Shown here: positions 28,407 through 45,994 of the stretch, piece by piece
Position numbering within the stretch: the first letter of the stretch is position 1
How the letters are laid out: the number at the start of each line of letters is the position of its first letter
Sequence record: AP018399.1
Length of the DNA stretch: 64,000 nt
Direction: 5' to 3' (one strand)
Position numbers and translations under genes: made by a program
Notes under the pieces: model-generated
Told to the model about the DNA's origin: nothing
Seen by the model: only the letters and a program-made list of their open reading frames with translations
Database searches by the model: none

Positions 28407-28515
28407 GGGAATGTAGCTCAGAGGACAGAGCGCAGGGCGAGGAAGGGACTGGTTTTCCACCAGTAAACCCATCCAATCTCAGAAGTCAGTGGTTCGAATC
28501 CATTCATTCCCACCA
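28407..28515 (+). ncRNA. tRNA-like RNA with 50-nt expanded anticodon arm
   Basis: perfect acceptor GGGAATG/CATTCCC-ACCA, normal D and T arms. Confidence 0.75.
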
Positions 28516-28552
28516 TTTTCGCAACACAATTGCACAGACACTAAATACCGTT

Positions 28553-28594
28553 ATGAACAAACCATATTACAAACGATATTACGCCAAAGCCTAA
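28553..28594 (+). CDS. 13-aa Tyr/Lys-rich micro-ORF (putative leader peptide)
   Basis: MNKPYYKRYYAKA, 5 nt after CTAAATA. Confidence 0.35.
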   Translation: MNKPYYKRYYAKA

Positions 28595-28687
28595 CAGGGC
28601 CGTATACGTTTGTGTGCGGTTCTGCAACGGAACCGTAGTACAGTGGTTATCTGATTCATAAATTCCCCTTAGTTTTACAAACAATTT

Positions 28688-28776
28688 GGACTCGTTCCCA
28701 TAGCTGGCCGAATGGAGCGGACTCTTAATCCGACAGCGAAAGCTCATCGTAGGTTCGAATCCTACCGGGTCCACCA
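28688..28776 (+). tRNA. tRNA-Lys(CTT) with long variable arm
   Basis: acceptor GGACTCG/CGGGTCC, loop CT-CTT-AA, canonical T arm, ACCA. Confidence 0.8.
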
Positions 28777-28816
28777 AATTTTACGCACTGGCGCTTGCGC
28801 CGTGTGACACGTCTAA

Positions 28817-28893
28817 GGGACGGTAGCTCAACGGTCTAGAGCAATCGGCTTTTAACCGATAGGTTGTGGGTTCGAATCCCACCCGTCTCACCA
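28817..28893 (+). tRNA. tRNA-Lys(TTT)
   Basis: canonical cloverleaf. Confidence 0.95.
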
Positions 28894-28898
28894 ACAAC

Positions 28899-28985
28899 GG
28901 ATAGGTATGCAAGCGGTCAACGCAATCGGATTGTAAATCCGCCGCCTTAAGGGCTTCGAAGGTTCGAATCCTTCTCTATCCACCA
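28899..28985 (+). tRNA. tRNA-Tyr(GTA)
   Basis: canonical class II cloverleaf. Confidence 0.95.
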
Positions 28986-28989
28986 ATTT

Positions 28990-29061
28990 GGGCTTCACAA
29001 TCTATAGTGAGAACGCCGTAACTCGGCGCAGTCGGCGACTAGGTATCGCCAAAGTCCACCA
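28990..29061 (+). ncRNA. 72-nt cloverleaf with non-canonical loops, ACCA end
   Basis: GGGCTT/AAGTCC-ACCA; CGCCG-TAACT-CGGCG; GGCGA-CTAGGTA-TCGCC. Confidence 0.6.
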
Positions 29062-29066
29062 TCTTC

Positions 29067-29166
29067 GTCAACTAGTAGCTTAATAGGAAAGCGGCCGGGA
29101 GCGCCCGGTAATAGCACGAAACCCTTGTGGGTTAGCGATGTGGGCTGCGATACCCACCTAGTTGAC
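29067..29166 (+). ncRNA. 100-nt tRNA-like RNA with 9-bp terminal stem
   Basis: GTCAACTAG/CTAGTTGAC; D-arm-like GCTT-AATAGGA-AAGC; GTGGG/CCCAC T-like arm. Confidence 0.55.
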
Positions 29167-29239
29167 AATCTCTTCATCTTCCCCTACAATTTGCCTCGTT
29201 GTTTTAACCCTTTCATTTTAACCAACCAAGGAAATTACT

Positions 29240-30151
29240 TTGAAGAAGATTTTTACCCTGCTGTTTGCGTCCATCATGGCCCTGAGCCTGTCGGCCTGTC
29301 GTGGTGAACTGGTGGAAGTCCCGCCTGCCCACGTCGGCAAAATCATGACCAAGGACGGCTACCGCGAAGGCGTCATCGGTACCTCCAAGTTCCGCCTCGA
29401 CGTGTGCTACAACTACTGCGACAAGCTGGTTCTGCTGCCGGTCGCTGACCAAGCGAACATCGAAACCCTCGACATTTTCATGCCGCAGGACAAGCTCAAG
29501 CTCAAGGTCACCATCCGCACCAACCTGACCATCACCGACAAGAAGCAGATGGACTCGCTGTTCAACAGCGTTGCTCCTACCGAGTCGGAAGAGAGCCAGA
29601 AGGTTGCCCGCATCGGCCGCGATATCGTCTACAAGACCTATGCGCAGCAGATTATCCAGACCGAAGCTCGCGAATACCTGAGCCAGTTCACCATCGCCGA
29701 AGTCGCAAGTTCGATGGAGAAGGTGAATGCTGACCTGTCGGCCCGTCTGTCGAAGGCCATCAAGGAACGCACCCCGTTCAACGTTCGCTACGTCGGCATC
29801 ACTGGTATCGAATACCCGGCCATCATCACCGAAGCGCAGGAAAATGCTGCGAAGCGTCGTGAAATGATTGAGCAGGAAAATGCGCAGAAGCAGGTTGACC
29901 AAGTGAAGCTGGAACGCCAGTTGAACGAAGCTCAGTTGCAGCGCAAGATTGACGTGGAAAAGGCGGAAGCCGATGCCGAAGCTGACCGCATTCGTGCCGT
30001 CGCTGCCAACAACCCGGCCGTCATCAAGCTGCGTGAACTGGAAAATGAGCGTGCATGGATTGACGCTTGGAAGGCTGGTGGTTCGCAAGTCCCAAGCGTC
30101 GTGACCGGTGAGCAGGGCAGTAACTTCCTGATGCAGATGCCGAAGAAGTAA
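29240..30151 (+). CDS. SPFH/band-7 lipoprotein
   Basis: lipobox LSAC, VPPAHVG, coiled-coil C-terminus. Confidence 0.85.
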   Translation: MKKIFTLLFASIMALSLSACRGELVEVPPAHVGKIMTKDGYREGVIGTSKFRLDVCYNYCDKLVLLPVADQANIETLDIFMPQDKLKLKVTIRTNLTITDKKQMDSLFNSVAPTESEESQKVARIGRDIVYKTYAQQIIQTEAREYLSQFTIAEVASSMEKVNADLSARLSKAIKERTPFNVRYVGITGIEYPAIITEAQENAAKRREMIEQENAQKQVDQVKLERQLNEAQLQRKIDVEKAEADAEADRIRAVAANNPAVIKLRELENERAWIDAWKAGGSQVPSVVTGEQGSNFLMQMPKK

Positions 30152-30258
30152 TCCCGCACAGGGGAATGCAGAAAAGGGAGCCGAAAGGTTCCCTTTTTTG
30201 TTGACACAAGTTCTACATCTGGTATAATTCCCTCATCATCAACGGAGAAGTTCAACAC

Positions 30259-30678
30259 ATGGTTCTGTTCCTCAATTACCTGCCGTACCTCATCATCGCT
30301 CTGGGTCTGTTCCTCTGCTACCGTGCCAGCGTCAAGCACAAGGGCACCGACAAGGTTGGCAAGAGAATCGTCCTCTGGCTGGCCCTGACCATCGTCGCTC
30401 TCATCGCCCTGCGTGCAGTGAGCAATGGATATCTCGGCAAGGCTGTCGGTGCGAAGCTGGAAACCCCGACCGTGGAAGAACTGGCTACCGAAGCCGAAGA
30501 AGCCGCCCCCATCAAGGACGTGCTGCGCAAGCCTGACCGAACGGCCGAAGAGTCCGACAAGCACTTCGCTGCTCTGACCGACTGGCGAGCCGACAAGGCA
30601 GCGCGGGAGAACCCGCCGAAGCCGGAACCGGAAGCCACTACGGAAACGCAGGAACTTCCACTCCCCGCCAAGCAGTAA
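30259..30678 (+). CDS. membrane protein (2 TM)
   Basis: hydrophobic N-terminus. Confidence 0.75.
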   Translation: MVLFLNYLPYLIIALGLFLCYRASVKHKGTDKVGKRIVLWLALTIVALIALRAVSNGYLGKAVGAKLETPTVEELATEAEEAAPIKDVLRKPDRTAEESDKHFAALTDWRADKAARENPPKPEPEATTETQELPLPAKQ

Positions 30679-30762
30679 AAATGAAGAGTCAAGTATCGAA
30701 AGGTACTTGACTCTTTCATTATGAACGGTTATAATTTCGGCCTACTCCAACGGAACACCGAA

Positions 30763-32424
30763 ATGACCGACCAGATTGACGACACCGCCGAACGCATCAA
30801 GAAGCTGCTGATTTCGTTGGTGGAAAGGCTCGGCCCGGATGCTGACCCGGATATGGTCGCCGAGATTCAGATGATGCGTGCGGCCGACATTATCAAGTCG
30901 CACCTGACCGATATCACCAAGGCCCGTACCATCGTGCTGACTGGCGATACGTCGCACCTGTCGGTTCGCAGCATCATCCAGCGCCTTGCGGATATCGACA
31001 AGCCGAAGCGGTACGACTTCCAAGACGACAACGTTCACGAACAGGAATTCCTGCGTGGCCTGCTGCATTGCGTCCCCAGCTACATCATGCGTGGCGACGT
31101 GACCAAGGAACAGGTCATGAATGCCATCGACGGCAAGGAATGGCTGGAACTGCCGGAAGGTCGTGAGTACAAGTGCTACGACTGTGCCCAGCCGCTCAAG
31201 GTGGCGTTCAAGGGCAATGAAGTCCGTATCACTGCCGAGAAGGTGTGCGAACACAATCACACGTTCACCATCGAAGTGGATTTCCCCACGGGTGAAGTCG
31301 TGTTCGATGACTGGCCGGCTCGTTTCTCGGAAGCCCGTGATGCTGGTTTCATCACCGAAACCGATGATGGCGAATCCATCAACTACCTCAAGGGCCAGCG
31401 TCAGAGTACGGACAACTATGCCAGTCAGCAGATTGTCCATCACAGCGTCGGCAACACCTGTCCCACGTTCTTTGTGAACAAGGAAACGGGTGCCATCCAG
31501 ATTGGTAGCCGCTGGGATGATGAGCAGGACGAACACGTCACTCCGGAAGGCATGGAGGATGTTGGTTCCTTCTGCACGGACCTGTGGTGGGTGACCATGC
31601 TCGACCGCAAGTTCTACGACACCATCGTGGGCAAGCTGCCGCAGCAGAAGTCGAAGAAGTATTACGACAAGGAACTGCACATCGCGCACATTCCTCCGGG
31701 CCGCTATCGCTTTACCTGCTATGGCCGCACGGAAGAAGACATGGATATGTTCATGACCGGTGAACGTATCGGCGATGCCAGCGATTTCATGCCGCCGTTC
31801 GACGTGCTGGCTTCGAAGCGTCTCATGACTCTGGACGAAGCCACGTTCAAGTACCTGTCGATGTGGGGTAAGCCGCGAGGCAATCCGCTGTCCGCTCGTT
31901 TCCGCTTCCTCGACTACGTGTTCAACACCATCGGCAATGGCCTGCGTTCGAAGGGCGAACTGTTCAACGCTTACAGCATCGCCAATGATGCCGTGGGTGA
32001 TGTGATTCCGCCTTCGGATGACCCGCTGGACAAGAAGAATCCCTATCCGAATTTCAAGAAAGAATACAGCACCATCTACAGCGTACCGCTGAAAGACATG
32101 CCTACGGATTGGCTGGAAGGCGTCTTGTGGTATTACGAAGAATGCAAGACCTACTTCGAAAATGGTGCGGAGGGCTATAGCTATGCCTACCCGTCAAAGC
32201 AAAACCGGGACGACGAACTCGCCAAGCACTTCGAAAAGTATCGCAAGGACGGACAAAGCGAAGAAGAATACTTCGCTGCGGTGTCCAAAGCATACGAATG
32301 TGAATTCCGGGGTGACATTCCGGATTTCCAAACCCGACGCTGGGAAAAGGAAAAGGCTCGCATCCTTGCTTTCATCAGCGACACCATGAAGTACATCAAG
32401 GAAGAGCTTGACACGCGAGGTTGA
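30763..32424 (+). CDS. large hypothetical protein (553 aa)
   Basis: long ORF; start placed after TTGACT-17-TATAAT promoter. Confidence 0.8.
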   Translation: MTDQIDDTAERIKKLLISLVERLGPDADPDMVAEIQMMRAADIIKSHLTDITKARTIVLTGDTSHLSVRSIIQRLADIDKPKRYDFQDDNVHEQEFLRGLLHCVPSYIMRGDVTKEQVMNAIDGKEWLELPEGREYKCYDCAQPLKVAFKGNEVRITAEKVCEHNHTFTIEVDFPTGEVVFDDWPARFSEARDAGFITETDDGESINYLKGQRQSTDNYASQQIVHHSVGNTCPTFFVNKETGAIQIGSRWDDEQDEHVTPEGMEDVGSFCTDLWWVTMLDRKFYDTIVGKLPQQKSKKYYDKELHIAHIPPGRYRFTCYGRTEEDMDMFMTGERIGDASDFMPPFDVLASKRLMTLDEATFKYLSMWGKPRGNPLSARFRFLDYVFNTIGNGLRSKGELFNAYSIANDAVGDVIPPSDDPLDKKNPYPNFKKEYSTIYSVPLKDMPTDWLEGVLWYYEECKTYFENGAEGYSYAYPSKQNRDDELAKHFEKYRKDGQSEEEYFAAVSKAYECEFRGDIPDFQTRRWEKEKARILAFISDTMKYIKEELDTRG

Positions 32425-32441
32425 TGGGTTATAATAAACCC

Positions 32442-32798
32442 ATGACCTACACCGTCCAATACGCAGACAAGAGTCGGCTTCCGACTCTTGTCGCTGCCTA
32501 CCAACTGGTTGACCAAGCTCTCAAGGGCTTGGCAATCACGAAGGATTGCGCGGTTACGCTCAATCGCTTCTACTACGACAATGAATTCTTCCTCTTCAAC
32601 TTCTCCGTGACGTTGAAGGGGACCAAGCCCTGCATGTACCTGCTTTCCATCCCCAATGACAGTGCGATGGGCATGATGGGCTGGACTATCCGCAGCAACA
32701 AGTGGAATGGTCAGCGGGAGCCAATCGACTCGCCTGCGTTGTCATTCGGCCACTTCATCCGCAAGACGGACCACGACAAGAACAAGAAGAAGAAATGA
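32442..32798 (+). CDS. hypothetical protein
   Basis: ORF. Confidence 0.7.
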   Translation: MTYTVQYADKSRLPTLVAAYQLVDQALKGLAITKDCAVTLNRFYYDNEFFLFNFSVTLKGTKPCMYLLSIPNDSAMGMMGWTIRSNKWNGQREPIDSPALSFGHFIRKTDHDKNKKKK

Positions 32799-33037
32799 AC
32801 ATCAACGAATACAAGAAGCGCAAGTTCCGTGAACTCAAGGCCAAGAAGAAGGCATTCGGCTTCGAACTATCGGTGCATGACCCGGCTTCCATCATCGCTG
32901 CCGCCAAGGCAATCGAAATGGCCGAATGGATGGACAAGGGCGTTCTGGTCGAATTCAAGACCGATTACAACGCGCGTGAACTGAAAATCTATACCGATAA
33001 CCCGGCTTTGGCTGGTGAAATGCGTCTTCTGTGTTGA
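32795..33037 (+). CDS. hypothetical protein
   Basis: coupled start. Confidence 0.65.
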   Translation: MNINEYKKRKFRELKAKKKAFGFELSVHDPASIIAAAKAIEMAEWMDKGVLVEFKTDYNARELKIYTDNPALAGEMRLLC

Positions 33038-33069
33038 CAAATCATTGCCAGTATGATTAAATACTGGTA

Positions 33070-33264: not shown

Positions 33265-33304
33265 TCTGCTATAATTACCCAATCTTCCCAACAGGAACAC
33301 TTCA

Positions 33305-34171: not shown

Positions 34172-34247
34172 GGCCCGTTAGCTCAGCGGTCAGAGCAAGA
34201 GCCTCTAAAACTCCGGGTCGTGGGTTCGAATCCCACACGGGCCACCA
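34172..34247 (+). tRNA. amber suppressor tRNA (CTA), A73
   Basis: loop CT-CTA-AA; acceptor GGCCCGT/ACGGGCC-ACCA. Confidence 0.85.
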
Positions 34248-34254
34248 ATCAAAT

Positions 34255-34330
34255 GCTTTCGTAGCTCAGCGGTCAGAGCAAGAGCCTCTAAAACTCCGGG
34301 TCGTGGGTTCGAATCCCACCGAAAGCGCCA
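34255..34330 (+). tRNA. amber suppressor tRNA (CTA), G73
   Basis: same 58-nt body; acceptor GCTTTCG/CGAAAGC-GCCA. Confidence 0.85.
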
Positions 34331-34370: not shown

Positions 34371-34685
34371 ATGAACGAAATCATCCAGAAGATGTTCCCC
34401 ACTGGCACTCTCAATGGCCGTGGTGGTACCGAAGTGAACGGTCTGACCAAGGGCACGGTTCCGGCTGGTACCATTCTCAAGAGTGGACAGGACAAGTTCG
34501 ACAACAAGGGCCGTCGTGAATTCTACGCGGTCGAACTGGATGGGCATGTCGCGTACCTGCGAGTGTGCGAAGCATATCCGGGTAGTGGCTATGACGAATT
34601 CGCGGTTATACATCGCGTCGTCAAAGCCGAAGAGACGGAAGAAGTGAATGAAATTCTCAACACCGTTTCTCGTATGACCAGCTAA
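34371..34685 (+). CDS. hypothetical protein
   Basis: ORF with promoter. Confidence 0.75.
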   Translation: MNEIIQKMFPTGTLNGRGGTEVNGLTKGTVPAGTILKSGQDKFDNKGRREFYAVELDGHVAYLRVCEAYPGSGYDEFAVIHRVVKAEETEEVNEILNTVSRMTS

Positions 34686-34755
34686 AAAGTAGTTGACAAG
34701 TTCGATTTTTGTAGTAAAGTATCAATCTCGGTGACGGCATAGAGGCCACTCACTG

Positions 34756-34782
34756 GTTCTTTAACAACTTGAGCGGAAACAA
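34756..34782 (+). promoter_or_regulatory. rrn/nut-like boxA plus GCGGAAA hairpin, copy 1
   Basis: GTTCTTTAACAA then CTTG-AGCGGAAA-CAAG; related element at 36313-36347. Confidence 0.55.
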
Positions 34783-34783
34783 G

Positions 34784-34976
34784 TTCATAGACTGAACATG
34801 CCTCGGTAGGTCAGTATGGTGGCAACACCATCTGGGGATGAGGACATGCTAGGAACCAATATGCTTTGGATACGCAGTGGTCGTTCACTAGCCACGACTA
34901 CGGTATACGCTATCAGCACACAATATGCATTGAATGTGCGGCGATTTGAAAGCTAGAGGCGTGTTCAATCTATGAA
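34784..34976 (+). ncRNA. 193-nt structured ncRNA closed by an 18/19-bp stem
   Basis: TTCATAGA-C-TGAACATGCC pairs with GGCGTGTTCA-A-TCTATGAA; internal hairpins. Confidence 0.6.
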
Positions 34977-34980
34977 TTTT

Positions 34981-35105
34981 TGGTAGGTAAGCAAGTGGGC
35001 AACGTAAGACGGCAATGGTGTAGGTATCCGTGAGGTATCAGAGTACGGTTGAGTCTCCCAGAAACCGTTTCAACTTCGTGAGTTCGAATCTCACCCTACC
35101 AGCCA
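34981..35105 (+). ncRNA. 125-nt tRNA-like RNA with large insert in the anticodon region
   Basis: TGGTAGG/CCTACCA-GCCA, canonical T arm, Tyr-like D region. Confidence 0.7.
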
Positions 35106-35112
35106 ATTCTAT

Positions 35113-35177
35113 GCACAGGTTACTTGGAAGCATCCGGTTGCGCACCGTGATGGGTGGTTCGATACCACTTCTGTGCC
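35113..35177 (+). ncRNA. D-arm-reduced tRNA-like RNA (GCG loop), no encoded CCA
   Basis: GCACAGG/TCTGTGC; CGG-TTGCGCA-CCG; GGTGG-TTCGATA-CCACT. Confidence 0.55.
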
Positions 35178-35191
35178 GCGATTCGTATAGT

Positions 35192-35339
35192 ATTCTGATG
35201 GCGAAATAGGTAGACGCGGGGGTCTAGGCCAATATGGAGAAGGGAGCTAAACATTCCCTCTGCTGCTCATGGTCGGAAACTGCTGTGAAAGCGTTGCAGC
35301 AAAACGCTGACCGTGTGGGTTCGACTCCCACTCAGAAAT
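35192..35339 (+). ncRNA. Leu-type tRNA scaffold with ~97-nt core
   Basis: TGGCGAAATAGGTAGACGC D arm, GTGGG-TTCGACT-CCCAC T arm, TTCTGA/TCAGAA acceptor. Confidence 0.65.
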
Positions 35340-35351
35340 TACTATATAACA

Positions 35352-35418
35352 GTATGGTCGTAATCCCTTTAAAATGAAGGGCGTTCGGACGCGGGTTCGA
35401 TTCCCGCCACGTCCACCA
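35352..35418 (+). ncRNA. ssrA: tmRNA acceptor piece (circularly permuted gene)
   Basis: TTCGGAC-GCGGG-TTCGATT-CCCGC-CACGTCC-ACCA; pairs with GGGCGTG at 35533 including G3-U70. Confidence 0.85.
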
Positions 35419-35532
35419 CATGCATCTTATAGCCAGAACTGAATCTGGTAAGAGGTAGTCAGCCACATTGAACCTTTCAGTAGAGCGCTGACCTAAGTCG
35501 CATGTAGTAACCCGCTTTAGGGTGCAAGTGAT

Positions 35533-35760
35533 GGGCGTGCCAAGGTTTCGACGGGCGAAGATAGTGGAGAAGGCGACTAGCCAGAGTAGGCTCTAAAACT
35601 AAAACCTAAAGTAACTGCCAACGCAAATACTTTCGATTACGCACTAGCTGCCTAATCCCAAGCACATCCAGCACTTGGTCACCGAACGCTGGGCAATAGC
35701 AGTCCTTGGACTGTCTATTGTGAAACATCTTCTGGTTCAGCCAGCCTAGGCAAAAGACGC
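35533..35760 (+). ncRNA. ssrA: tmRNA coding piece; tag ANANTFDYALAA* at 35617-35655; 3' end approximate
   Basis: GGGCGTG..AAGGTTTCGACGGG 5' end, PK1 (AGAG/CTCT with TAGG/CCTA), tag ending YALAA. Confidence 0.85.
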
Positions 35761-35762
35761 AT

Positions 35763-35852
35763 GGCGGTATGGCACTCCGCATACAGAGGGTGTATTCACA
35801 ATATGCAGTTCGTTATTGAGAGGAAATGTAGGTTCGATTCCTACGGTCGCCG
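35763..35852 (+). ncRNA. degenerate tRNA-like element
   Basis: canonical T arm GTAGG-TTCGATT-CCTAC, partial acceptor, possible CAC loop, no CCA. Confidence 0.4.
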
Positions 35853-35982
35853 CAGACCCCACTATGCTGGTCTGTGAAAAACAGTCGATATGGGTTAATA
35901 TGGAAAACGCCTCTCATCTTTCAAATAGGAGTTGACAATGAGCATTGTTTTTGCTACTATGTCGGCTTCTGTAACAAGCTAC

Positions 35983-36176
35983 GCCCTTGAGTAAGACAGT
36001 CAGGGAGTAAGCTCTTAATGTGAGCATGGTCGCCCCCACCTTTTGATAGGCTAGCCGGGGAGAGGTTCGAATCCTCTAAGCACCGTTAGGCTGAGACGAA
36101 AGGACTACGTTGCGAAGCATTGCACGCCAATTCCGGAAACGGCTGGTAGTGTTAGCATCCGACTACAAGGGCACCA
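35983..36176 (+). ncRNA. 194-nt RNA with tRNA acceptor stem and ACCA end, internal T arm
   Basis: GCCCTTG/CAAGGGC-ACCA; internal AGAGG-TTCGAAT-CCTCT; own promoter at 35932. Confidence 0.65.
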
Positions 36177-36312
36177 AATTAGGTGTTGACAAACGAAGAA
36201 AGTATGGTAATATGTACTTCTTCACCGGTAACCACTGACGATTGGCCCACCGCAAAAGGGCCGAAACAGAGAGACACAAGCGAGTTTACCTCCTTCCTCG
36301 CCGTCTCCTGTC

Positions 36313-36347
36313 TGGTTTGACAACTTGAGTGCGGAAACAATCTCAAG
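36313..36347 (+). promoter_or_regulatory. boxA-like plus GCGGAAA hairpin, copy 2
   Basis: TGGTTTGACAA then CTTGAG-TGCGGAAACAAT-CTCAAG. Confidence 0.5.
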
Positions 36348-36349
36348 GT

Positions 36350-37110
36350 GGAATAGCGTACAGTGATGTGCGTAAAGTGTGGCCCGCTCAGGCTGCGCAC
36401 CATGCAAATGGCTCCATCAAACAAGCACCGACTCCGGGGCACGCCAAAAGTGTGTCACGGCCCTTGTGAAGAACCACGAGGGAACTTGGAAAAGGTGCCC
36501 GACAAGCTAGTCTTGGGACAACTGAGACAGTTTCCACCCGCAAAGTGGATTAGGGATGCAACACGGATACCAAGCACTAGTCAAGGTGTAGAACATAAGC
36601 ATGAGGCTGCAACCAAGTGCGATGTTCAGTGAAGTGGGACTGTTTAACAGGCAGAACCGCATATACAATCCGAGTAGCCGCAAGCGAAAGGATACAGGGG
36701 CGTGTTGTATTTGGTACTTCAAAAGGGTATCGAGCAACGGCAACACACGTCCTGAGCAACAAAACAACTTCATAGGTTAATGAAATTAATTAAACGCAAA
36801 GTTGTTGCCGGTGCATGATGAAAGTGACGTAATGCTTGACACGCAAGTGAATCAAGCCATTCCGAGGCTCGCAAGGCAGAGGGGTGTTGTGGGAAAGTCG
36901 CACGTTTGGGGTCGAACCCTTTACTGCTCGCAAGGCAGGCGGTAGACAGAACCATGAATAGTCATGCACGACAGTGGAAATGCCACCACTTTAATCTAGG
37001 CCGTCATGGTTGCTACTCACATGAGTGAGTGGATAACGGTAGAAACTTCGCTCGCAAGCGGAGTATAATGACCGGAAAGGTAACCAATCAATGCTGTAAT
37101 CTCAGGCAGG
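36350..37110 (+). ncRNA. large ornate ncRNA candidate (GOLLD/ROOL class); boundaries approximate
   Basis: ~750 nt with no codon-biased ORF, many GNRA hairpins, CTCGCAAG x3, inside tRNA cluster. Confidence 0.55.
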
Positions 37111-37177
37111 CTTTTCCAATAAATTCAAGACCTTGCAGCTTTAAGCGCAATCACACTAAATAGATTTACATTTCTAT

Positions 37178-37263
37178 GCGGGTGTGGCCGAGTGGTCGAT
37201 GGCACTAGTCTTCCAAACTAGACTCAGAAATGGGCGCGAGTTCGAATCTCGCCACCCGCTCCA
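37178..37263 (+). tRNA. tRNA-Gly(TCC) with long variable arm
   Basis: CT-TCC-AA loop, U73, V arm CTCA-GAAA-TGGG. Confidence 0.85.
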
Positions 37264-37388
37264 AATTCAAAGAATTCAAGACAGATGTACACTGGACTGA
37301 ATCGTCATTAGCGCCCAAGGGTGCAGAGAGTTCCGCTAGTATCTCGCTGCAACGACGTTAATGAATGTTCGACTAGCTCCAAATTTGA

Positions 37389-37467
37389 CGCGCGGTACAA
37401 TCAATATCGGCAGATGGGCACCCTCATAAGGTGTCGGTTGGGAGTTCAAGTCTCCCCTGCGCTACCA
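37389..37467 (+). tRNA. tRNA-Met/Ile2(CAT)
   Basis: CT-CAT-AA loop, unpaired 1:72, ACCA. Confidence 0.8.
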
Positions 37468-37495: not shown

Positions 37496-37554
37496 CGTAG
37501 GTGTGACCGGCTCTCATGAGGCTTGTCGGTTCTTGACTGAGCAACCTACAACCA
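37496..37554 (+). ncRNA. 59-nt mini tRNA-like RNA (CAT loop, no D arm)
   Basis: C-GTAGGT/ACCTAC-A-ACCA; GGCT-CTCATGA-GGCT; TCGG-TTCTTGA-CTGA. Confidence 0.45.
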
Positions 37555-40444: not shown

Positions 40445-40485
40445 TTTCACTCTAATTGCAACCACACTAAATAGTTTTACAATAT

Positions 40486-40693: not shown

Positions 40694-40784
40694 GCCACTT
40701 TGCCTGAGTCCGGTCGATAGGAACTGCCTTGTAAGCAGTCGGGATAATACCCCATCGCAGGTTCAAATCCTGTGGGTGGCACCA
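40694..40784 (+). tRNA. tRNA-Thr(TGT) with long variable arm
   Basis: CT-TGT-AA loop; V arm GGG-ATAATA-CCC. Confidence 0.85.
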
Positions 40785-41142: not shown

Positions 41143-41148
41143 ATTCGG

Positions 41149-41424: not shown

Positions 41425-41428
41425 CAAT

Positions 41429-41504
41429 AGGGGTTTAGCCAAGTGGTTAAGGCATGGGCCTTTGACTCCCAGACCGGTAGGTTCGATTCCTCCAACCCCT
41501 GCCA
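41429..41504 (+). tRNA. tRNA-Gln(TTG)
   Basis: canonical. Confidence 0.95.
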
Positions 41505-41544
41505 AACCAGTTGACAAATGAACTTGATGGGTTATAATTAATCC

Positions 41545-41751
41545 ATGAACATACATTCGTTGACCCATGCAGTATCGGTGACCAGCACCAAGGCGGATTG
41601 TCTGGACTTCCTTGGCCTTGACCACTCCACGCGGAACTTCCGGCTCATGTCGGATGCCATCAAGAAGCACGGCATCGACACCAGCCACTTCGTAGGAATC
41701 AAGGCTTCGGAGTACGTGGCACGCTTCAAACCAGTTGACAATCAGTTTTAA
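41545..41751 (+). pseudogene. N-terminal fragment resembling phage HNH homing endonucleases
   Basis: AV..TS..D.L..LGL.....N.......IKKHGIDTSHF.G pattern with no HNH domain following. Confidence 0.45.
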
Positions 41752-41980
41752 TCTGGTAAGATAACATCATCACATCGGGTAAGCCCTTCACTGACCAGTG
41801 AGTCCGAGGAAGGGAGAGAAAGCAGGCCGGGTTGTTGGGGGCGCTGCCGAAAAGAGGGAGAGACAGTGGCACGAATGAAGCAAATGCATCTGGATATCAT
41901 CGAAAGCCAAGAGGCTGACGAGGAAGGTATCATCAATGCGGTGCCAACTCCGGTTCCGTCTCCCGCACGGGAGGTCGCAA

Positions 41981-42229
41981 ATGCCGAAGTATCTCCTGAT
42001 TGATTCCACTTCGGTTTTCATTCCGGGCGACGAGCGTTCACGCACGAATCCCGGTCACGGATACCCCGAGCGGACGGAAACGTACCCGGTGTTGAAGTGG
42101 TTCGATACCGAGCAGCAAGTGCTGGAATATCTGGAAACGTGGGGTCGTAACATCAAAGACCCGCAGATATGGGAACTCGCTGGTAAAGTCAAACTGGAAG
42201 TGAAGACTACCTTGTCACTTTCCAAGTAA
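41981..42229 (+). CDS. hypothetical protein
   Basis: GGAGG RBS; GDERSRTNPGHGYP. Confidence 0.7.
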   Translation: MPKYLLIDSTSVFIPGDERSRTNPGHGYPERTETYPVLKWFDTEQQVLEYLETWGRNIKDPQIWELAGKVKLEVKTTLSLSK

Positions 42230-42235
42230 TATTCC

Positions 42236-42322
42236 GGGCATGTGGCGGAATTGGTAGACGCGGCAGACTCAAAATCTGTTGGTAGAAATACCGTGTCGGT
42301 TCGATTCCGACCTTGCCCACCA
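42236..42322 (+). tRNA. tRNA-Leu(CAA)
   Basis: class II cloverleaf. Confidence 0.95.
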
Positions 42323-42336
42323 AACAAGAGAACGCA

Positions 42337-42726
42337 ATGAAGATTTCCTTCCGTACTGCTGTCATGATTGCCATCGCTGTTGGTGTCGCGGGAAGCCTGC
42401 TTCTCCCCGTCAATGCGAAGGCTCAGGATGTTATCAGCCAGACCAACGCCACCATGATGGCGTTCCAGCCTGCGATGACTGCCGACACCAGTTCCAGCAA
42501 GCCCACAACGCCGCCTCCGGCCAAGCTGTACCGTGAGCGCGTACCGGGTAAGCCGGAAGAAGGATTCGTTCCTGTGACGGCTCCGGTGAAGAAGAACTAC
42601 CAGTACACGAGGGTGGACTATCCCTACGGTGAAGTTCTCATCTTCGAAGACTTCGTTCGTCGCAATGTGTGCTACATCACCATCAATAACGGTCGAATCT
42701 CGGAATCCTGTGTTCCCATGAAGTAA
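42337..42726 (+). CDS. secreted hypothetical protein
   Basis: signal peptide. Confidence 0.7.
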   Translation: MKISFRTAVMIAIAVGVAGSLLLPVNAKAQDVISQTNATMMAFQPAMTADTSSSKPTTPPPAKLYRERVPGKPEEGFVPVTAPVKKNYQYTRVDYPYGEVLIFEDFVRRNVCYITINNGRISESCVPMK

Positions 42727-42735
42727 GGAAAACAA

Positions 42736-43107
42736 ATGAAAACTGCACTAAAGGTTCTGGGTATTCTGGCTCTGGTTTTCTTCTTGCTGGTCGGCGGCTG
42801 CACTATGCTGGTCATGATGACACCAAAAAAGCCGGTTGTAGCCGAAGTAAAGAAGGATGCCATCGACCAAACTCGTGATATCGTGAATTTCACGTACAGT
42901 GCTGCCAAGCAGTGTGAAAAATACGGCGATGGGTCTAGCTCATGTAGTCTGTTTAAGAACCAAACACGTAATCGGGTAATTCGTGATATCATCTATGCTC
43001 CGGCTGTTCCGGGTGAAGTGATGGCTGAATTCAATAAGCGCGGATACTTCACCGAATATACCGAACAAATGTTGTATATTGAAGCTGTCGATAAACATCT
43101 TCGATAA
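42736..43107 (+). CDS. membrane-anchored hypothetical protein
   Basis: N-terminal TM segment. Confidence 0.7.
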   Translation: MKTALKVLGILALVFFLLVGGCTMLVMMTPKKPVVAEVKKDAIDQTRDIVNFTYSAAKQCEKYGDGSSSCSLFKNQTRNRVIRDIIYAPAVPGEVMAEFNKRGYFTEYTEQMLYIEAVDKHLR

Positions 43108-43108
43108 C

Positions 43109-43183
43109 GGGCCGGTAGCATATGGGTAAATGCGTCCGACTCATAATCGGTTGAGCAAGGTTCGATTCCTTGACGGCCCACCA
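43109..43183 (+). tRNA. tRNA-Met/Ile2(CAT)
   Basis: CT-CAT-AA loop. Confidence 0.9.
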
Positions 43184-43201
43184 AACTAAATAGGTTTACA
43201 C

Positions 43202-43278
43202 GGTAATATAACTCAGCCCGGTAGAGTAGCGCCCTCATAAGGCGTTTGTCGCAGGTTCGAATCCCGCTATTACCACCA
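43202..43278 (+). tRNA. tRNA-Met(CAT)
   Basis: canonical. Confidence 0.9.
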
Positions 43279-43326
43279 AGATTTATCTTGACAGCCTCAA
43301 ATGAGGCTGTTATAGTTTTAGAACAT

Positions 43327-43415
43327 GACGCGGTGCCGGAGTCTGGTTGAACGGGATGGACTGCAAATCCATAAGCGAAAGCTCATCACAGGTTCAAATC
43401 CTGTTCGCGTCTCCA
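43327..43415 (+). tRNA. tRNA-Cys(GCA) with long variable arm
   Basis: CT-GCA-AA, U73, V arm AAGCGAAAGCTCATC. Confidence 0.85.
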
Positions 43416-43420
43416 AATAC

Positions 43421-43570
43421 GGGGTGTTAGGGAATTGGAAAACTCGCCGGAAGTAATCCGGTAGCTTGTGATAAGGTTGCAACCACCGAAATCGACTGCA
43501 TTCTAGAACGTAGTCACTAGTAGGTATCATGATAGCTTGACTTTGGTTCGAATCCAGAGACACCCCACCA
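43421..43570 (+). ncRNA. 150-nt tRNA-like RNA with ~78-nt branched variable region
   Basis: GGGGTGT/ACACCCC-ACCA, D arm, GCCGG-AAGTAAT-CCGGT, TTCGAAT T loop. Confidence 0.75.
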
Positions 43571-43591
43571 ATTCACAACAAAGGAAGTAAG

Positions 43592-43861
43592 ATGTTCGCT
43601 CTACTGAGAAAGAAGTTCGGCACTGCTGCTTTCGTGTTCCCGCTGATGGCGCTCATGGGCATCGTCTTCCATGTGGAGCCGAAGGATATCCTGCTGGGTT
43701 CCGTCCTGATGTACATCGTTACGCTCGCTCTGCTGATGCTGGACGACGTGTTCGTGTTTGAATTCGCGGACAATGGCGCGCTTCTGAGCGAGGAAGAGCT
43801 TGTCGAATTTGACAAGCTGGTTTCACCTGTACAAGTTACAGTGGAAGTGCAATACAACTAA
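43592..43861 (+). CDS. membrane protein
   Basis: two TM segments. Confidence 0.7.
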   Translation: MFALLRKKFGTAAFVFPLMALMGIVFHVEPKDILLGSVLMYIVTLALLMLDDVFVFEFADNGALLSEEELVEFDKLVSPVQVTVEVQYN

Positions 43862-43881
43862 ATAGCTTTACAAGGTGGGAT

Positions 43882-44091
43882 ATGAAGAAAATCAAGGGGT
43901 TGTTCGGGAAGTATCCCGTCGCTGCTAACTCTTCATCGTATTTCGCCGCAACATTCGTTGGAACCGGTGCAGTAGCTACCGTATTCAATCGACCGATAGA
44001 AGAAGCAATCTTCATATCAGTCATCATGGCCGTAACGGGCGGTGTAATTGGATGGGTAAAAACTGTTGACAAAGACGGTGAAAGCGAATAA
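43882..44091 (+). CDS. membrane protein
   Basis: two TM segments. Confidence 0.6.
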   Translation: MKKIKGLFGKYPVAANSSSYFAATFVGTGAVATVFNRPIEEAIFISVIMAVTGGVIGWVKTVDKDGESE

Positions 44092-44103
44092 GATACAAAC
44101 TTC

Positions 44104-44192
44104 GGGTCGGTCGCATAGTGGCCGAGTGCAACGGGCTGTTAACCCGTCGAGTTAATACTCCATCGCTGGTTCGAATCCAGCCCGGTCCGCCA
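44104..44192 (+). tRNA. tRNA-Asn(GTT) with long variable arm
   Basis: CT-GTT-AA, G73; V arm GAGT-TAAT-ACTC; G3-U70 pair. Confidence 0.85.
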
Positions 44193-44228
44193 AATTCACA
44201 AACGTTACAACCATACTAAATAGTTTTT

Positions 44229-44354
44229 ATGAACGCTATCCATATTGACAACCGAGCCGACCGATTTATCAGCATTATTGCTGATGATAGCGTCAGCGCG
44301 CGTGTGGATAGTTTTAGTGTTGTAGCAGTAGATTCAAGTAACAAGCAAGAGTAA
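44229..44354 (+). CDS. 41-aa Asp/Ile-rich micro-ORF after late promoter motif
   Basis: MNAIHIDNRADRFISIIADD... Confidence 0.35.
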   Translation: MNAIHIDNRADRFISIIADDSVSARVDSFSVVAVDSSNKQE

Positions 44355-44386
44355 GGCCAAGGAATCATTCTCGGTCTTACAGACAC

Positions 44387-44465
44387 GGGAATGTAGCTCA
44401 GTTTTTGGTAGAGCAGTAGCCTGAAAAGCTTCGTGTCGTAGGTTCGATTCCTATCATTCCCACCA
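44387..44465 (+). tRNA. tRNA-Phe(GAA)
   Basis: canonical. Confidence 0.95.
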
Positions 44466-44498
44466 AATTTCGATGTGCGCAGCAATGCGTTCGTCAAC

Positions 44499-44573
44499 GG
44501 TGAGTTCGTTTAACGGTTAGGATTCCGGCCTGTCACGCCGGGGACACGGGTTCGATTCCCGTACTCACCGCCA
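44499..44573 (+). tRNA. tRNA-Asp(GTC)
   Basis: canonical. Confidence 0.95.
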
Positions 44574-44579
44574 ATCTTT

Positions 44580-44663
44580 GGGGTCATGGTGTAAAAAAGC
44601 ATTGCGCCCTGTCTGGGCGTAGATGATGGAGAGGTAGCGCTGCCTGCCCATCTGGCCCCGCCA
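44580..44663 (+). ncRNA. Asp(GTC)-like tRNA with T loop replaced by an extended hairpin
   Basis: GGGGTCA/TGGCCCC-GCCA; CT-GTC-TG loop; GATGG-(AGGTA-GCGC-TGCCT)-CCATC. Confidence 0.65.
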
Positions 44664-44733
44664 ATTTGAAGTAGGTGACAGCGGAAGGTTTTACTTGCCA
44701 AGGATGGCAATAGGTGTTAAGATTTACAAATGA

Positions 44734-44809
44734 TGGACCGTAGCTCAGTTGGTAGAGCAAACGACCGATAATCGTTTGGTCGCTGGTTCAAATCCAGCCG
44801 GTCCAACCA
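44734..44809 (+). tRNA. tRNA-Ile(GAT)
   Basis: canonical. Confidence 0.95.
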
Positions 44810-44829
44810 AACAACCAGAAAGGACTTAA

Positions 44830-45240
44830 ATGAAAAAGATTCTTGCAGTTGCAGTGATGTTCATGGTAGCATTCAGCGCCGCAGCCGGTGACTTCGATAC
44901 GAAGACCATCCAGCGCGATGACGGAAGCGTCCAGCATGTGATTCCAGTCACCGAGCAGACGTGCGACTTGCAGAACAAGTCCAATCTGGGCAATGCAGCC
45001 ATCGGTGCTGGTGTCGGTTACGCAACCGGACGTGTCATCAGTGGTCGCAGTCGCAACAGTGGCATGTGGGGTCTGGCAGGTGCAGCCGCAGGCGCACTCA
45101 TCGGTGCCAACACGCAGAAGTCGCAGGAGTGCCGTTACAAGACGGTGTTGAAGGGCCACAAGGTCATCACCATCAGCAAGGACGGCAAGATGAAGGAAGA
45201 TTTCGTTCCTTACGTCGGACCTGAGAAGGTTAAGCTGTAA
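44830..45240 (+). CDS. secreted glycine-zipper protein
   Basis: signal peptide; GAGVG and GAAAGALIG. Confidence 0.75.
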   Translation: MKKILAVAVMFMVAFSAAAGDFDTKTIQRDDGSVQHVIPVTEQTCDLQNKSNLGNAAIGAGVGYATGRVISGRSRNSGMWGLAGAAAGALIGANTQKSQECRYKTVLKGHKVITISKDGKMKEDFVPYVGPEKVKL

Positions 45241-45521
45241 TGCGCAAGTTCGAAGTGATTACGAAGCCGACCAACACGGTCAAGCTCACTATCGCGAAAG
45301 ACCGCGTTACCGTGAAGCTCCCGGAGTCAATCACTCTGGTGAATGCCGAACGAATCGTGAAGTTCTTCAAGAAGGTGGCTGACAAGAATCCTTCGCCGGA
45401 ATTCACGTTGCGCGGTAATGGTACACCGGAGAATGTCATGCGACACGGCATTGCGATGTACTCTGGGATTCGTCCCGGTCGTAAGCCGGTCAACGAAGGT
45501 TCGTACAAGTTTGAAGAGTAA
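45240..45521 (+). CDS. hypothetical protein
   Basis: coupled start. Confidence 0.7.
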   Translation: MRKFEVITKPTNTVKLTIAKDRVTVKLPESITLVNAERIVKFFKKVADKNPSPEFTLRGNGTPENVMRHGIAMYSGIRPGRKPVNEGSYKFEE

Positions 45522-45523
45522 GA

Positions 45524-45649
45524 CGTTCTCGGACGTAAACCGAGTGGTGGAGGGCCGGGAAGCCGACCCCTAAAAGCAAGACGGCAACGACTAGACTGAC
45601 CGCCGAAATATGCATAGAAGAGTCAAACTAGTGACAGCAAGAGAGAATG
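45524..45649 (+). ncRNA. structured ncRNA candidate
   Basis: CGTTCTC/GAGAATG closing stem; ACTAG/CTAGT and TGAC/GTCA helices. Confidence 0.35.
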
Positions 45650-45677
45650 CACAGAATTCAATTGATTAGAGAGAACG

Positions 45678-45905
45678 ATGAAGATTTTTGCACGACCCAA
45701 GGCTTCAACCGCAGAGCGTAACAGCAAGATGGGATTTTCCCAGCGTATGAGTCCGAGGTATGCGTATGAAATTGAGCGCGTCTTCGAAGATAAGGATGGA
45801 GTGAAGCGTGTTGCGCTGTCTGGTTACAGCAAGGCGCATACGATGAACTACACCGCCGAGGACTACACGTTCGAAGATGCCATCAAGCGTCCTGTCGTCG
45901 TCTAA
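45678..45905 (+). CDS. hypothetical protein
   Basis: ORF track. Confidence 0.65.
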   Translation: MKIFARPKASTAERNSKMGFSQRMSPRYAYEIERVFEDKDGVKRVALSGYSKAHTMNYTAEDYTFEDAIKRPVVV

Positions 45906-45914
45906 GCAATATAT

Positions 45915-45994
45915 ACGGGTGTAACCACCGTGCCTACGAAGCACGAGTAAGGTAATGGATGAAAATGCAGGTTCGACCCCTGTCGCCCGTGCCA
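45915..45994 (+). tRNA. tRNA-Arg(ACG)-like gene lacking the D arm
   Basis: ACGGGTG/CGCCCGT-GCCA, CGTGC-CTACGAA-GCACG, canonical T arm; only 7 nt between acceptor and anticodon stem. Confidence 0.7.

Follow-up and report, generated by a model that had tools for sequence, protein, structure and literature searches.

What are twelve tRNA-like elements doing among the ordinary tRNA genes of a bacteriophage? The question is raised by a 64,000-nucleotide (nt) stretch of DNA, called the window here, which is 100% identical to Xanthomonas phage XacN1 (AP018399.1); a window position equals the record position minus 1875. XacN1 is a jumbo phage whose terminal repeat of 65,875 base pairs (bp) contains the window (PMC5852040), and the window contains a tRNA island. 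In the original prediction, the twelve elements (c1 to c12 here) were taken as one suite, in which the tRNA fold serves as a chassis for cargo RNAs or as a decoy for host tRNA-targeting defence. Our analysis partly confirmed the observation, which is largely right, and the interpretation is right in part. The elements are not one system, as the set mixes a candidate tRNA-Arg (c12), tRNA frames, a probable part of GOLLD RNA (c8) and remnants (c3, c7). We consider it probable that the island is an array of tRNA and non-coding RNA genes subject to fast duplication, remodelling and loss, and that the elements fall into four classes, namely the c12 tRNA, non-decoding frames, the c8 part of GOLLD and remnants. 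In particular, c12 looks, from its sequence, like a working arginine tRNA without a D arm and not like a cargo carrier or a decoy.

For comparison, we used the syntenic islands of Xoo-sp13, RAS14 and CM1, whose RNA genes are 70-85% identical to those of XacN1, and closer relatives obtained from public assemblies through the ORF088 and Band-7 proteins (L062, L054/L061, L063, L065, L056, L057 and L058). L062 is the closest relative, with 93-98% nucleotide identity to XacN1, and the genomes of the relatives are mosaic, with per-gene identities to XacN1 of 76-100%. The 28 IMG/VR loci retrieved through the Band-7 protein have that gene alone in common with the island.

A D-arm-less candidate tRNA-Arg and its family

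45915 to 45994, + strand: c12, D-arm-less tRNA-Arg with anticodon ACG (alignments, covariation and covariance model)

c12 is built of a 7-bp acceptor stem, U8-A9, an extended anticodon arm of about 10 bp with the loop CUACGAA, a 13-nt linker (AAUGGAUGAAAAU) between the anticodon arm and the T arm, a canonical T arm and G-CCA. Among the twelve elements, it is the only one with a 7-nt anticodon loop, including U33 and a purine at position 37, that is conserved among homologs, the loop being invariant in the members with anticodon ACG. When c12 was compared with its counterparts in Xoo-sp13 and CM1, the loop CTACGAA was invariant on a stem carrying four double substitutions; the copy in L061 is 97.5% identical. 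Using a motif scan and BLAST, we collected a family of 16 distinct sequences and 4 divergent ones, which occur in phages of five genera (Xanthomonas, Stenotrophomonas, Pseudomonas, Rhizobium and Mesorhizobium) as well as in IMG/VR and metagenome contigs. The isolated phages carrying a c12-type gene include Pseudomonas phages Bitten, ventosus and UAVern, Mesorhizobium phage Cp1R7A-A1 and Rhizobium phage RHph_I1_18, and the gene is annotated in none of the GenBank records of the members.

Covariance models and covariation in related phages had been proposed as a check with the original prediction, and both support the family. The structure tested consisted of the 7-bp acceptor, the extended anticodon arm of about 10 bp, a linker of 13-14 nt and the T arm. 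Over the 16 sequences, 95.1% of cells were paired, compared with 34-40% with slid partners, and compensatory change was found in 18 of the 22 pairs; none of 500 shuffles reached any of these measures. With the covariance model R1 (GGUAAUGGA-type linker), c12 scored 97.6 bits, the members 66-98 bits, the four divergent sequences 46-57 bits and canonical tRNAs at most 34 bits. Within the window, the model picks c12 only, and every other element stays at the canonical-tRNA background.

The anticodons point to arginine. C35 with G36 or U36 is present in 19 of the 20 family anticodons, as ACG, GCG, UCG or UCU. The canonical tRNA-Arg of the same array usually has a different anticodon from the D-arm-less one, and contig L008/L009 carries three D-arm-less Arg genes and no canonical tRNA-Arg. 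In XacN1 itself, CGT is used 20 times, CGC 18-25 times and AGA 1.7-2.6 times per 1000 codons; the sole annotated Arg tRNA is UCU (AGA), and no annotated phage tRNA covers CGU, CGC and CGA, which make up about 80% of the Arg codons. In the linker of the family, AAUGGA is invariant, and U8-A9 is kept upstream. We infer that the GGA of this motif may provide the equivalents of G18-G19-A20, of which A20 is a determinant of arginyl-tRNA synthetase (ArgRS).

We propose that in c12 the D stem and the anticodon stem would be fused into one hairpin of about 10 bp, and the D loop and the variable loop into the 13-14-nt linker with the GGA motif. Such an RNA could fold to an L shape and be charged by ArgRS and, as a phage tRNA-Arg(ICG), it would decode CGU, CGC and CGA after deamination of A34. 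Several points weigh against this reading. One weak divergent member of the family has the anticodon UAU (Ile). The arrays of L006 and L010 pair a canonical tRNA-Arg with a D-arm-less one of the same anticodon, which weakens a purely gap-filling role. The encoded CCA of c12 is lost in Xoo-sp13 and L061, and the equivalence of GGA with G18-G19-A20 is based on sequence alone.

Metagenomes and bacterial genomes were scanned with a 17-nt-linker pattern, which is incapable of matching the XacN1-type 16-nt linker. The metagenomes yielded four distinct true members (five loci, two of them identical) and one chance match, and the bacterial genomes yielded chance coding matches only, so that absence from bacterial genomes is shown for that sub-type only. 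Another scan for the 17-nt-linker form of the motif gave nothing useful. We came across no account of phage tRNAs without a D arm in the literature searched; in a 2020 review of non-canonical tRNAs, loss of the D arm is treated for mitochondria only, and a 2024 paper states that the known bacterial tRNAs are all cloverleafs.

Two further observations concern these genes. In the records of phages Bitten (L039) and RHph_I1_18 (L041), the locus-tag numbering skips one number exactly at the D-arm-less tRNA-Arg (tRNA0007 and EVB91_035, respectively), which suggests that the annotation pipeline made a prediction there that was later dropped. An unannotated D-arm-less element with the anticodon UAU is located at 9678-9757 of L010.

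Recognition of the elements within the tRNA island

All twelve predicted elements are present on the + strand, interleaved with the 28 tRNAs and the permuted transfer-messenger RNA (tmRNA) that ARAGORN reports for the window and with GOLLD RNA, which was added by Rfam at 36695-37108 (227 bits) together with two tRNA matches (28407-28512 and 37390-37462). The GenBank record and the paper on XacN1 annotate 26 canonical tRNAs, 2 amber suppressors and 1 pseudogene (anticodon TTC) per repeat (PMC5852040). The twelve elements, the tmRNA and GOLLD are all absent from both, and 34685-37178 is left empty there. The pseudogene was considered as one of the elements and rejected on its anticodon, TTC.

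As expected in the original prediction, tRNA finders miss the elements: ARAGORN with default settings finds none of them, and with the Rfam tRNA model (RF00005, threshold 29 bits) only c1 passes (45.6 bits), c2 to c12 giving no match even at E = 10. A strict scan, in which a 5-bp stem with an NTCNANN loop had to be followed at once by a 7/7 acceptor, recovered c1, c4, c5, c10 and c12 besides canonical tRNAs. A paired acceptor stem, claimed for every element, exists in eleven of them (7/7 pairs in c1, c3, c4, c5, c10, c11 and c12; 6/7 in c2, c6, c7 and c9), and c8 has no acceptor helix. Instead of the eight NCCA ends claimed, we counted seven, which accompany a 7/7 acceptor in c1, c4, c10, c11 and c12 and, as ACCA, a 6/7 acceptor in c2 and c9; c3, c5, c6 and c7 have no CCA. 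The remodelling of the arms is as it had been described, with a swollen anticodon arm in c1, a variable region of about 80 nt in c10, no D stem-loop in c12 and c5, and a replaced T loop in c2, c3 and c11. c1, c6 and c10 have a D stem-loop; that of c2, c3, c4 and c11 is degenerate.

c2, c3, c4-c6, c10 and c11 lie 4-13 nt from the adjacent tRNA or element, the same distance as between true tRNAs of the array. Folding z-scores were -2.7 to -3.05 for c2, c3, c6 and c11, -2.2 for c1 and -0.2 to -1.0 for c4, c7, c8, c9 and c12, with -1.5 to -4.5 for control tRNAs. They do not separate real from doubtful elements (c12 is real despite z = -0.9), and thus thermodynamics alone decides nothing. Membership in the YrlA family of bacterial Y RNAs (RF02553, threshold 69 bits) was rejected because the best matches (27.5 and 26.1 bits) are below the threshold and lie over the suppressor and Pro tRNA pairs, none of them over any flagged element.

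tRNA frames with non-decoding interiors

28407 to 28515, + strand: c1, tRNA-Phe-derived frame with acceptor, D arm, T arm and ACCA (Rfam tRNA 45.6 bits, fold)
34981 to 35105, + strand: c4, 125-nt tRNA-like RNA (strict acceptor and T-arm scan, four relatives)
35113 to 35177, + strand: c5, 65-nt D-arm-less mini tRNA-like RNA (strict scan, six sequences)
35192 to 35339, + strand: c6, 148-nt tRNA-Leu-derived element (comparison with Xoo-sp13)
43421 to 43570, + strand: c10, 150-nt tRNA-Leu-derived frame (strict scan, 5' part like tRNA-Leu)
44580 to 44663, + strand: c11, 84-nt four-way junction (z = -3.05, 0 of 200 shuffles as good)

c1 is paralogous to tRNA-Phe, with the first 16 nt identical, and has an irregular hairpin of about 40 nt in place of the anticodon loop; a sigma70-like promoter (28369-28397) ends 10 nt upstream. 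Its six homologs keep the frame and NCCA; of the pairs, 4 in the acceptor, 1 in the D stem and 1 in the T stem are compensatory. The replacement of the anticodon loop is the 40-nt hairpin in XacN1, L062 and L065, other inserts in L063 and Xoo-sp13, and an 8-nt loop in L056. Between XacN1 and L062, c1 is 88% identical and its flanks 96-100%, and the hairpin shows at least 3 double substitutions that keep the pairing. In c4, a long non-decoding interior is combined with a D region resembling that of Tyr/Ser tRNAs, with a canonical T arm and with GCCA. In four relatives, 11 of its 26 predicted pairs are compensatory, including pairs of the acceptor and T stems, and NCCA is found in all. The identity of c4 is 98% to L062 and 70% to L063.

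c5 consists of a 7-bp acceptor, an 11-nt GG-containing linker, an 8-bp arm with an invariant GCGC in its loop, and a T arm; CCA is not encoded, and the tail CCGCG is invariant. It lies directly upstream of the tmRNA gene in all six relatives. Compensatory changes occur in 1 acceptor pair and 2 arm pairs. Membership of c5 in the c12 family was ruled out by the covariance model.

c10 starts 5 nt after tRNA-Cys and has an acceptor, a D arm, a 5-bp arm, a T arm, A73-CCA and a variable arm of about 75-80 nt. It is 82% identical to its counterpart in L054, with 8 of 43 pairs compensatory and none broken; the giant arm is nearly invariant, and the 7-nt loop is AAGUAAU in XacN1 and GGAACAA in L054. 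c11, located 6 nt after tRNA-Asp, has a 7-bp acceptor, GCCA, a 5-nt 'anticodon' loop and an extended hairpin for the T loop. L061, the closest relative here, has an element with the same site and ends, and the comparison of the two acceptors (GGGGUUG/CAGCCCC-GCCA against GGGGUCA/UGGCCCC-GCCA) gives two compensatory pairs; the interior in L061 is longer and largely different, and c11 is absent from Xoo-sp13 and RAS14. In c6, the D arm is of Leu type and the T arm matches the tRNA-Leu(UAG) one exactly; a hairpin with the loop CUAAACA resembles an anticodon arm, the variable arm measures about 48 nt, and CCA is lacking. c6 is 81% identical to its counterpart in Xoo-sp13, with 2 compensatory acceptor pairs and 2 elsewhere. 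A pattern scan of IMG/VR for c6 found nothing, and when the window was searched for antisense targets of the loops conserved in c4 and c6, nothing convincing emerged.

As judged by these alignments, c1, c4, c5, c10 and c11 have kept their acceptor stems through compensatory changes (c1, c4 and c5 their T stem as well) around non-decoding interiors, which fits the chassis idea. That well-paired stems reflect selection and not decay is supported for these five, but not for c3 and c7, which lose the acceptor helix in relatives. Likewise, the tRNA fold as a chassis fits c1, c4, c10 and c11, where compensatory substitutions hold the acceptor and the anticodon position is not conserved, and it does not appear to extend to c12, c8, c3 and c7. 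Loss or degeneration in close relatives, which had been named as evidence to the contrary, was found for c3 and c7 (degenerate) and for c6 (absent from L062); the frames of c1, c4, c5, c10 and c11 are kept. We suppose that these five, and probably c6, are tRNA-derived RNAs unable to decode, in which the acceptor, usually the T arm and often CCA would be under selection and the former anticodon or variable arm would carry a structured insert as the functional part. By analogy with engineered tRNA scaffolds, the frame may provide RNase P processing, 3' trimming or CCA addition, and stability.

Taking c12 and the frames together, it is possible, and we propose it tentatively, that phages of several proteobacterial hosts use a charged, ribosome-read, D-arm-less three-way-junction tRNA-Arg and, in addition, natural tRNA-scaffolded RNAs (c1, c4, c5, c10 and c11), the acceptor/T-arm frame of which would deliver and stabilise a functional insert in the infected cell. 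Some of the evidence weighs against the reading of the frames given before. The closest relative can dispense with c6: L062, 93-98% identical on either side of it, lacks the element cleanly, and L054 and L056 lack it as well. Comparison supports c6, c10 and c11 through one relative each and c1 and c4 through only four to six sequences, and the six c5 sequences are as similar as 83-97%. Furthermore, c5 has a pyrimidine (C37) at position 37 and a variable position 33, and so it is neither a decoder nor an obvious cargo carrier.

Probable remnants and turnover of the array

28990 to 29061, + strand: c2, 72-nt cloverleaf-shaped element (fold z = -2.80)
29067 to 29166, + strand: c3, element closed by a 9-bp helix (fold z = -2.85)
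35763 to 35854, + strand: c7, tRNA remnant after the tmRNA (fold z = -0.53)
37496 to 37554, + strand: c9, 58-nt hairpin cluster (fold z = -0.99)

Compared with relatives, c3 and c7 are remnants or chance closures. c3 has a D-like arm, three hairpins and no CCA, and the -35 box of the ORF080 promoter (29162-29190) lies within its 3' strand and closing helix. Conservation in L063 (94%) is limited to the 70 nt at the 3' end, next to the promoter; both the closing helix and the first hairpin are disrupted there, and none of the pairs is compensatory. c7 has a canonical T arm, no CCA and, in XacN1 only, a 6/7 acceptor. L062 keeps its 3' 56 nt (T arm and 3' strand) and lacks the 5' acceptor strand, and in L058 the T arm is degenerate.

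c9, between a CAU tRNA-like gene and tRNA-Leu, has a 6/7 closing helix, ACCA and no T loop or D loop. Elsewhere it is found in L062 only (97% identity, background 97-98%); in L056 and L058, the genes flanking its site are 16-17 nt apart, with no such element. c9 is probably a remnant or a chance closure. c2 starts 4 nt after tRNA-Tyr. Its acceptor of 6 bp includes G3:U70 and is followed by A73-CCA, its 'anticodon' loop has 5 nt, and its third arm is not a T-loop arm. It is 100% identical in L062, its only other occurrence, and is absent at the same site in L056, L063, Xoo-sp13 and RAS14; the identity to L062 was rejected as a sign of selection, the local background being 97-98%. As c2 and c9 are confined to XacN1 and the near-identical L062, comparison is uninformative for both, and we place c2 in none of the classes. 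G3:U70 with A73-CCA is the signature of alanyl-tRNA synthetase, and its occurrence in the acceptor of c2 is a lead only, since one such case in twelve elements could be chance.

The rapid turnover of the array is also evident from its tRNA genes. At 28630-28687, XacN1 has the 5' half of a tRNA-Lys(CUU) in decayed form, and L056 has the intact gene in the same position (619-696), which is direct evidence of tRNA pseudogenisation in the array. Genes for homing endonucleases (HNH, NUMOD4) are scattered through the islands of relatives, and c6 is an insertion or deletion between the 93-98% identical genomes of XacN1 and L062. We suppose that tRNA genes of the array are duplicated, remodelled and lost quickly, and duplication followed by remodelling or decay explains the mixture of elements.

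The same turnover can be read further, such that most elements apart from c12 would be debris of duplication, recombination and homing-endonuclease traffic, paired because of their recent descent from tRNAs. The endonuclease genes, the decayed tRNA-Lys, the broken helices of c7 and c3, the presence or absence of c6 between near-identical genomes, the restriction of c2 and c9 to XacN1 and L062, and the different extra tRNA-like elements found at other positions in relatives all agree with it. However, debris does not account for the compensatory double substitutions in the acceptor stems of c1, c4, c5, c10 and c11 and in the T stems of c1 and c4, for the 83-97% identity of c5 over six mosaic genomes, or for the 75-nt arm of c10, which is near-invariant while its loop drifts. 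New helices such as the extended arm of c11 and the hairpin of c1 are well paired, and decay yields no such helices. We therefore consider this explanation unlikely for the elements as a whole, although it survives better than the other alternatives, and prefer the four classes given above.

c8, GOLLD RNA and the permuted tmRNA

35356 to 35721, + strand: permuted two-piece tmRNA gene (Rfam tmRNA_permuted 123 bits, beta_tmRNA 108 bits; ARAGORN)
35983 to 36090, + strand: c8, probable 5' part of the GOLLD RNA region (contiguous conservation in relatives)
36176 to 37108, + strand: GOLLD RNA (Rfam RF02032, 227 bits at 36695-37108; conserved 5' extension)

c8 has a T-arm-like hairpin and two other hairpins. 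In four relatives, 4 of the 5 T-hairpin pairs are compensatory, and no acceptor is predicted. The Rfam model covers only 36695-37108, and c8 lies outside this match; in L058, c8 is inside a block that is conserved up to it, the similarity running unbroken from 35990 to 37108, the end of the match. Judged by this contiguous conservation, c8 is probably the 5' part of the GOLLD region. The GOLLD region aligns with RAS14/CM1 and L058, and its 5' extension is conserved to at least 36176, and to 35990 in L058. A promoter (35932-35960) lies upstream of c8. GOLLD is also present in RAS14/CM1 and, in part, in phages BUDD and X1, and L054 aligns only over 36172-36265.

The tag of the tmRNA is read by ARAGORN as ANANTFDYALAA, and variants of the tag in relatives are ANAETFDYALAA, GNVETFDYALAA and DNVNSFEYAQAA. 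On examination of the tmRNA gene, c6 and c7 were rejected as parts of it. Further upstream, at 34693-34980, a sigma70-like promoter is followed by a non-coding region of about 250 nt that reaches up to c4; its first 90 nt or so are conserved in Xoo-sp13, RAS14, L054 and L056 (GGUGACGGCAUAGAGGCCACUCAC...UUCUUUAACAAyUUGAGCGG), and from this conservation the region is probably a further unannotated RNA ending at c4.

This arrangement allows an explanation in which the tRNA-like elements of 34981-36090 would be processing punctuation that releases the 34727-34980 transcript, the tmRNA pieces and GOLLD and would have no function of their own. c4 follows a conserved non-coding transcript with its own promoter, c5 is immediately 5' of the tmRNA gene in every one of the six relatives, and a tRNA-Gly lies 70 nt past GOLLD, as GOLLD genes typically adjoin tRNAs and sometimes contain a predicted one (PMC6582537). 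On the other hand, the tmRNA and c8/GOLLD each have their own promoter-like site, c1, c10, c11 and c12 flank no long RNAs, and the conserved giant arm of c10 would be superfluous for punctuation. We regard the punctuation role as improbable, and more so than debris.

Defence-related and intron-based explanations

A decoy function was part of the original prediction. In this explanation, the tRNA-shaped RNAs would be decoys or resistant substitutes against tRNA-cleaving defence nucleases of the host, and the D-arm loss of c12 and the long variable arms of other XacN1 tRNAs would be escape features. XacN1 encodes a CCA-adding enzyme, Pnkp/Hen1 RNA repair and a Thg1-like enzyme (PMC5852040), which is circumstantial support, and phage tRNAs are known to counter PARIS, retron effectors and PrrC-type nucleases (PMC11464382, PMC11555353, PMC10264068). 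The insert of c1 evolves faster than its flanks with its pairing kept, and the same-anticodon pairs of L006 and L010 also agree with decoys. However, no host nuclease against tRNA-Arg or the tRNA frame was identified, the anticodon loop that anticodon nucleases read is missing from most of the non-decoding elements, and the c12-type anticodons complement that of the canonical Arg tRNA in most arrays, as they would for ordinary decoders. A decoy role thus appears slightly less probable still than punctuation. Among ten proteins of the island that were scanned against Pfam, none has a domain related to tRNA.

That introns interrupt c1 and the 134-nt 'tRNA-OTHER' of RAS14, so that removal of the insert would give a decoding tRNA, is by far the least probable explanation and was rejected for c1: ARAGORN with introns allowed does call c1 a tRNA-Trp(CCA) with a 33-nt intron, and the phage group encodes an RNA ligase and Pnkp, but the predicted spliced stem has an A-A mismatch, the inserts differ among the homologs of Xoo-sp13, L063 and L056, which share no anticodon, the inserts of 8-57 nt compare with at least about 200 nt for group I introns and match no Rfam intron family, and no splicing endonuclease for such inserts is known in bacteria.

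Other genes of the array

37390 to 37466, + strand: tRNA with CAU anticodon, aberrant D region and ACCA (Rfam tRNA 31.3 bits)
28688-28776, 37178-37263, 40694-40784, 43327-43415 and 44104-44192: long tRNAs for Lys(CUU), Gly, Thr, Cys and Asn, respectively
37139-37170, 40450-40481, 43169-43200, 43841-43872, 44205-44227 and 28530-28552: copies of the motif CACACTAAATAGnTTTACA

The element at 37390-37466 is a thirteenth one beyond the twelve originally listed; it was missed by ARAGORN with default settings and is the third tRNA with a CAU anticodon. In three relatives, the C1xU72 mismatch is conserved, 5 of the 6 anticodon-stem pairs are compensatory, and the loop sequence, CUCAUAA, does not vary. 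Possibly, this gene supplies the initiator or Ile2-type tRNA that the set is missing.

At 37305-37372, there is a conserved hairpin RNA of about 65 nt with the core AGCGCCCAAGGGTGCAGAGAGTTyCGCyAGTATCTCGCTGCAACGACGTT and a covarying outer stem. Xoo-sp13 and Stenotrophomonas phages Moby, IME-SM1 and YB07 carry it within tRNA arrays, on the upstream side of tRNA-Leu, and it also occurs in Xanthomonas phage BUDD, whose record has no tRNAs annotated nearby; it has no Rfam match and is annotated in none of the records carrying it.

The five long tRNAs (86-91 nt) have class-II-like D arms and long variable arms. Some of them share the arm AGCGAAAGCUCAUC, their discriminator bases are as expected for their own amino acids, and the RAS14 versions are of normal length. 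The two amber-suppressor (CUA) tRNAs (34172-34247 and 34255-34330) have identical bodies and different acceptor stems, and relatives have one or two copies; no read-through targets of the suppressors were found in the XacN1 paper (PMC5852040). Further unannotated non-canonical tRNA-like genes were seen at 21225-21358 of L003, 22564-22665 of L002, and 7153-7227 and 8199-8326 of L056; among them are the RAS14 'tRNA-OTHER', with an insert of about 57 nt in the anticodon region, and several elements of 75-128 nt ending in ACCA.

Many tRNAs of the island have sigma70-like promoters and a repeated motif, CTAAATAG, a few bases upstream. The motif CACACTAAATAGnTTTACA is repeated 5-10 nt upstream of several tRNA genes. 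From its sequence, it resembles a T4-late-type promoter, and those tRNAs may have dual promoters.

Implications

If the proposed reading of c12 is true, the D-arm-less tRNA-Arg would be the first natural non-organellar tRNA outside the cloverleaf rule. If it is charged and translating, ArgRS, EF-Tu, RNase P and the ribosome of bacteria would all accept a natural non-cloverleaf tRNA, for which mitochondria and forced laboratory evolution are the only precedents so far. Standard finders would then also undercount phage tRNA sets; in the published set of XacN1, about 80% of the Arg codons have no decoder. As for the conserved frames that do not decode, they would be the counterparts in nature of engineered tRNA scaffolds, and they point to phage small RNAs encoded next to tmRNA and GOLLD as a class that is still unexplored.

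Comparison with known systems

The phage tRNAs that evade anticodon nucleases, such as the T5 tRNA-Lys and tRNA-Tyr, likewise belong to arrays shaped by host defence and accompanied by RNA-repair genes. However, in these known cases the cloverleaf is canonical and the anticodon loop carries point changes, whereas the XacN1 elements are re-architected folds. With the tRNA-like domain of tmRNA, an anticodon-less mimic, c2 shares G3:U70 and A73-CCA, and a true permuted tmRNA lies 6 kb away; in contrast to tmRNA, c2 has 72 nt and no mRNA-like domain, tag region or pseudoknots.

Compared with canonical bacterial and phage tRNA-Arg, c12 has the same 7-nt loop CUACGAA (C35, G36), T loop, 7-bp acceptor and CCA, and its GGA may correspond to that of the Arg D loop. 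Its loop and GGA are presumably like those of Escherichia coli tRNA-Arg2 and T4 tRNA-Arg. Unlike them, c12 has no D stem-loop, is unmatched by RF00005 at E = 10 and is missed by ARAGORN.

Natural tRNA-like chassis are known from MALAT1 mascRNA and from the tRNA-like/pre-miRNA genes of murine gammaherpesvirus 68. In engineered tRNA scaffolds, a cargo replaces the anticodon arm, and c1, c4, c10 and c11 likewise keep the acceptor and CCA, and c1, c4 and c10 the T arm too, around a structured insert (the comparison is based partly on PMC3753655). The XacN1 frames differ from scaffolds and mascRNA in being natural and phage-encoded, with inserts in the anticodon or variable position, and are known here from sequence.

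c12 and c5 resemble the metazoan mitochondrial tRNAs that lack the D arm (e.g. tRNA-Ser AGY/AGN), where a connector also replaces the D arm and a longer anticodon helix keeps the acceptor-to-anticodon distance (PMC7609411, PMC4013460). The same combination of a connector and a lengthened helix is found in c12, with a 10-pair arm and a 13-nt linker, and in c5, with an 8-pair arm and an 11-nt connector. In contrast to the mitochondrial tRNAs, c12 and c5 are encoded by a phage in bacteria and not by an organelle, c12 has a full canonical T arm and a conserved GG-containing linker on the 3' side of the anticodon arm, and its family is tied to arginine, not to serine.

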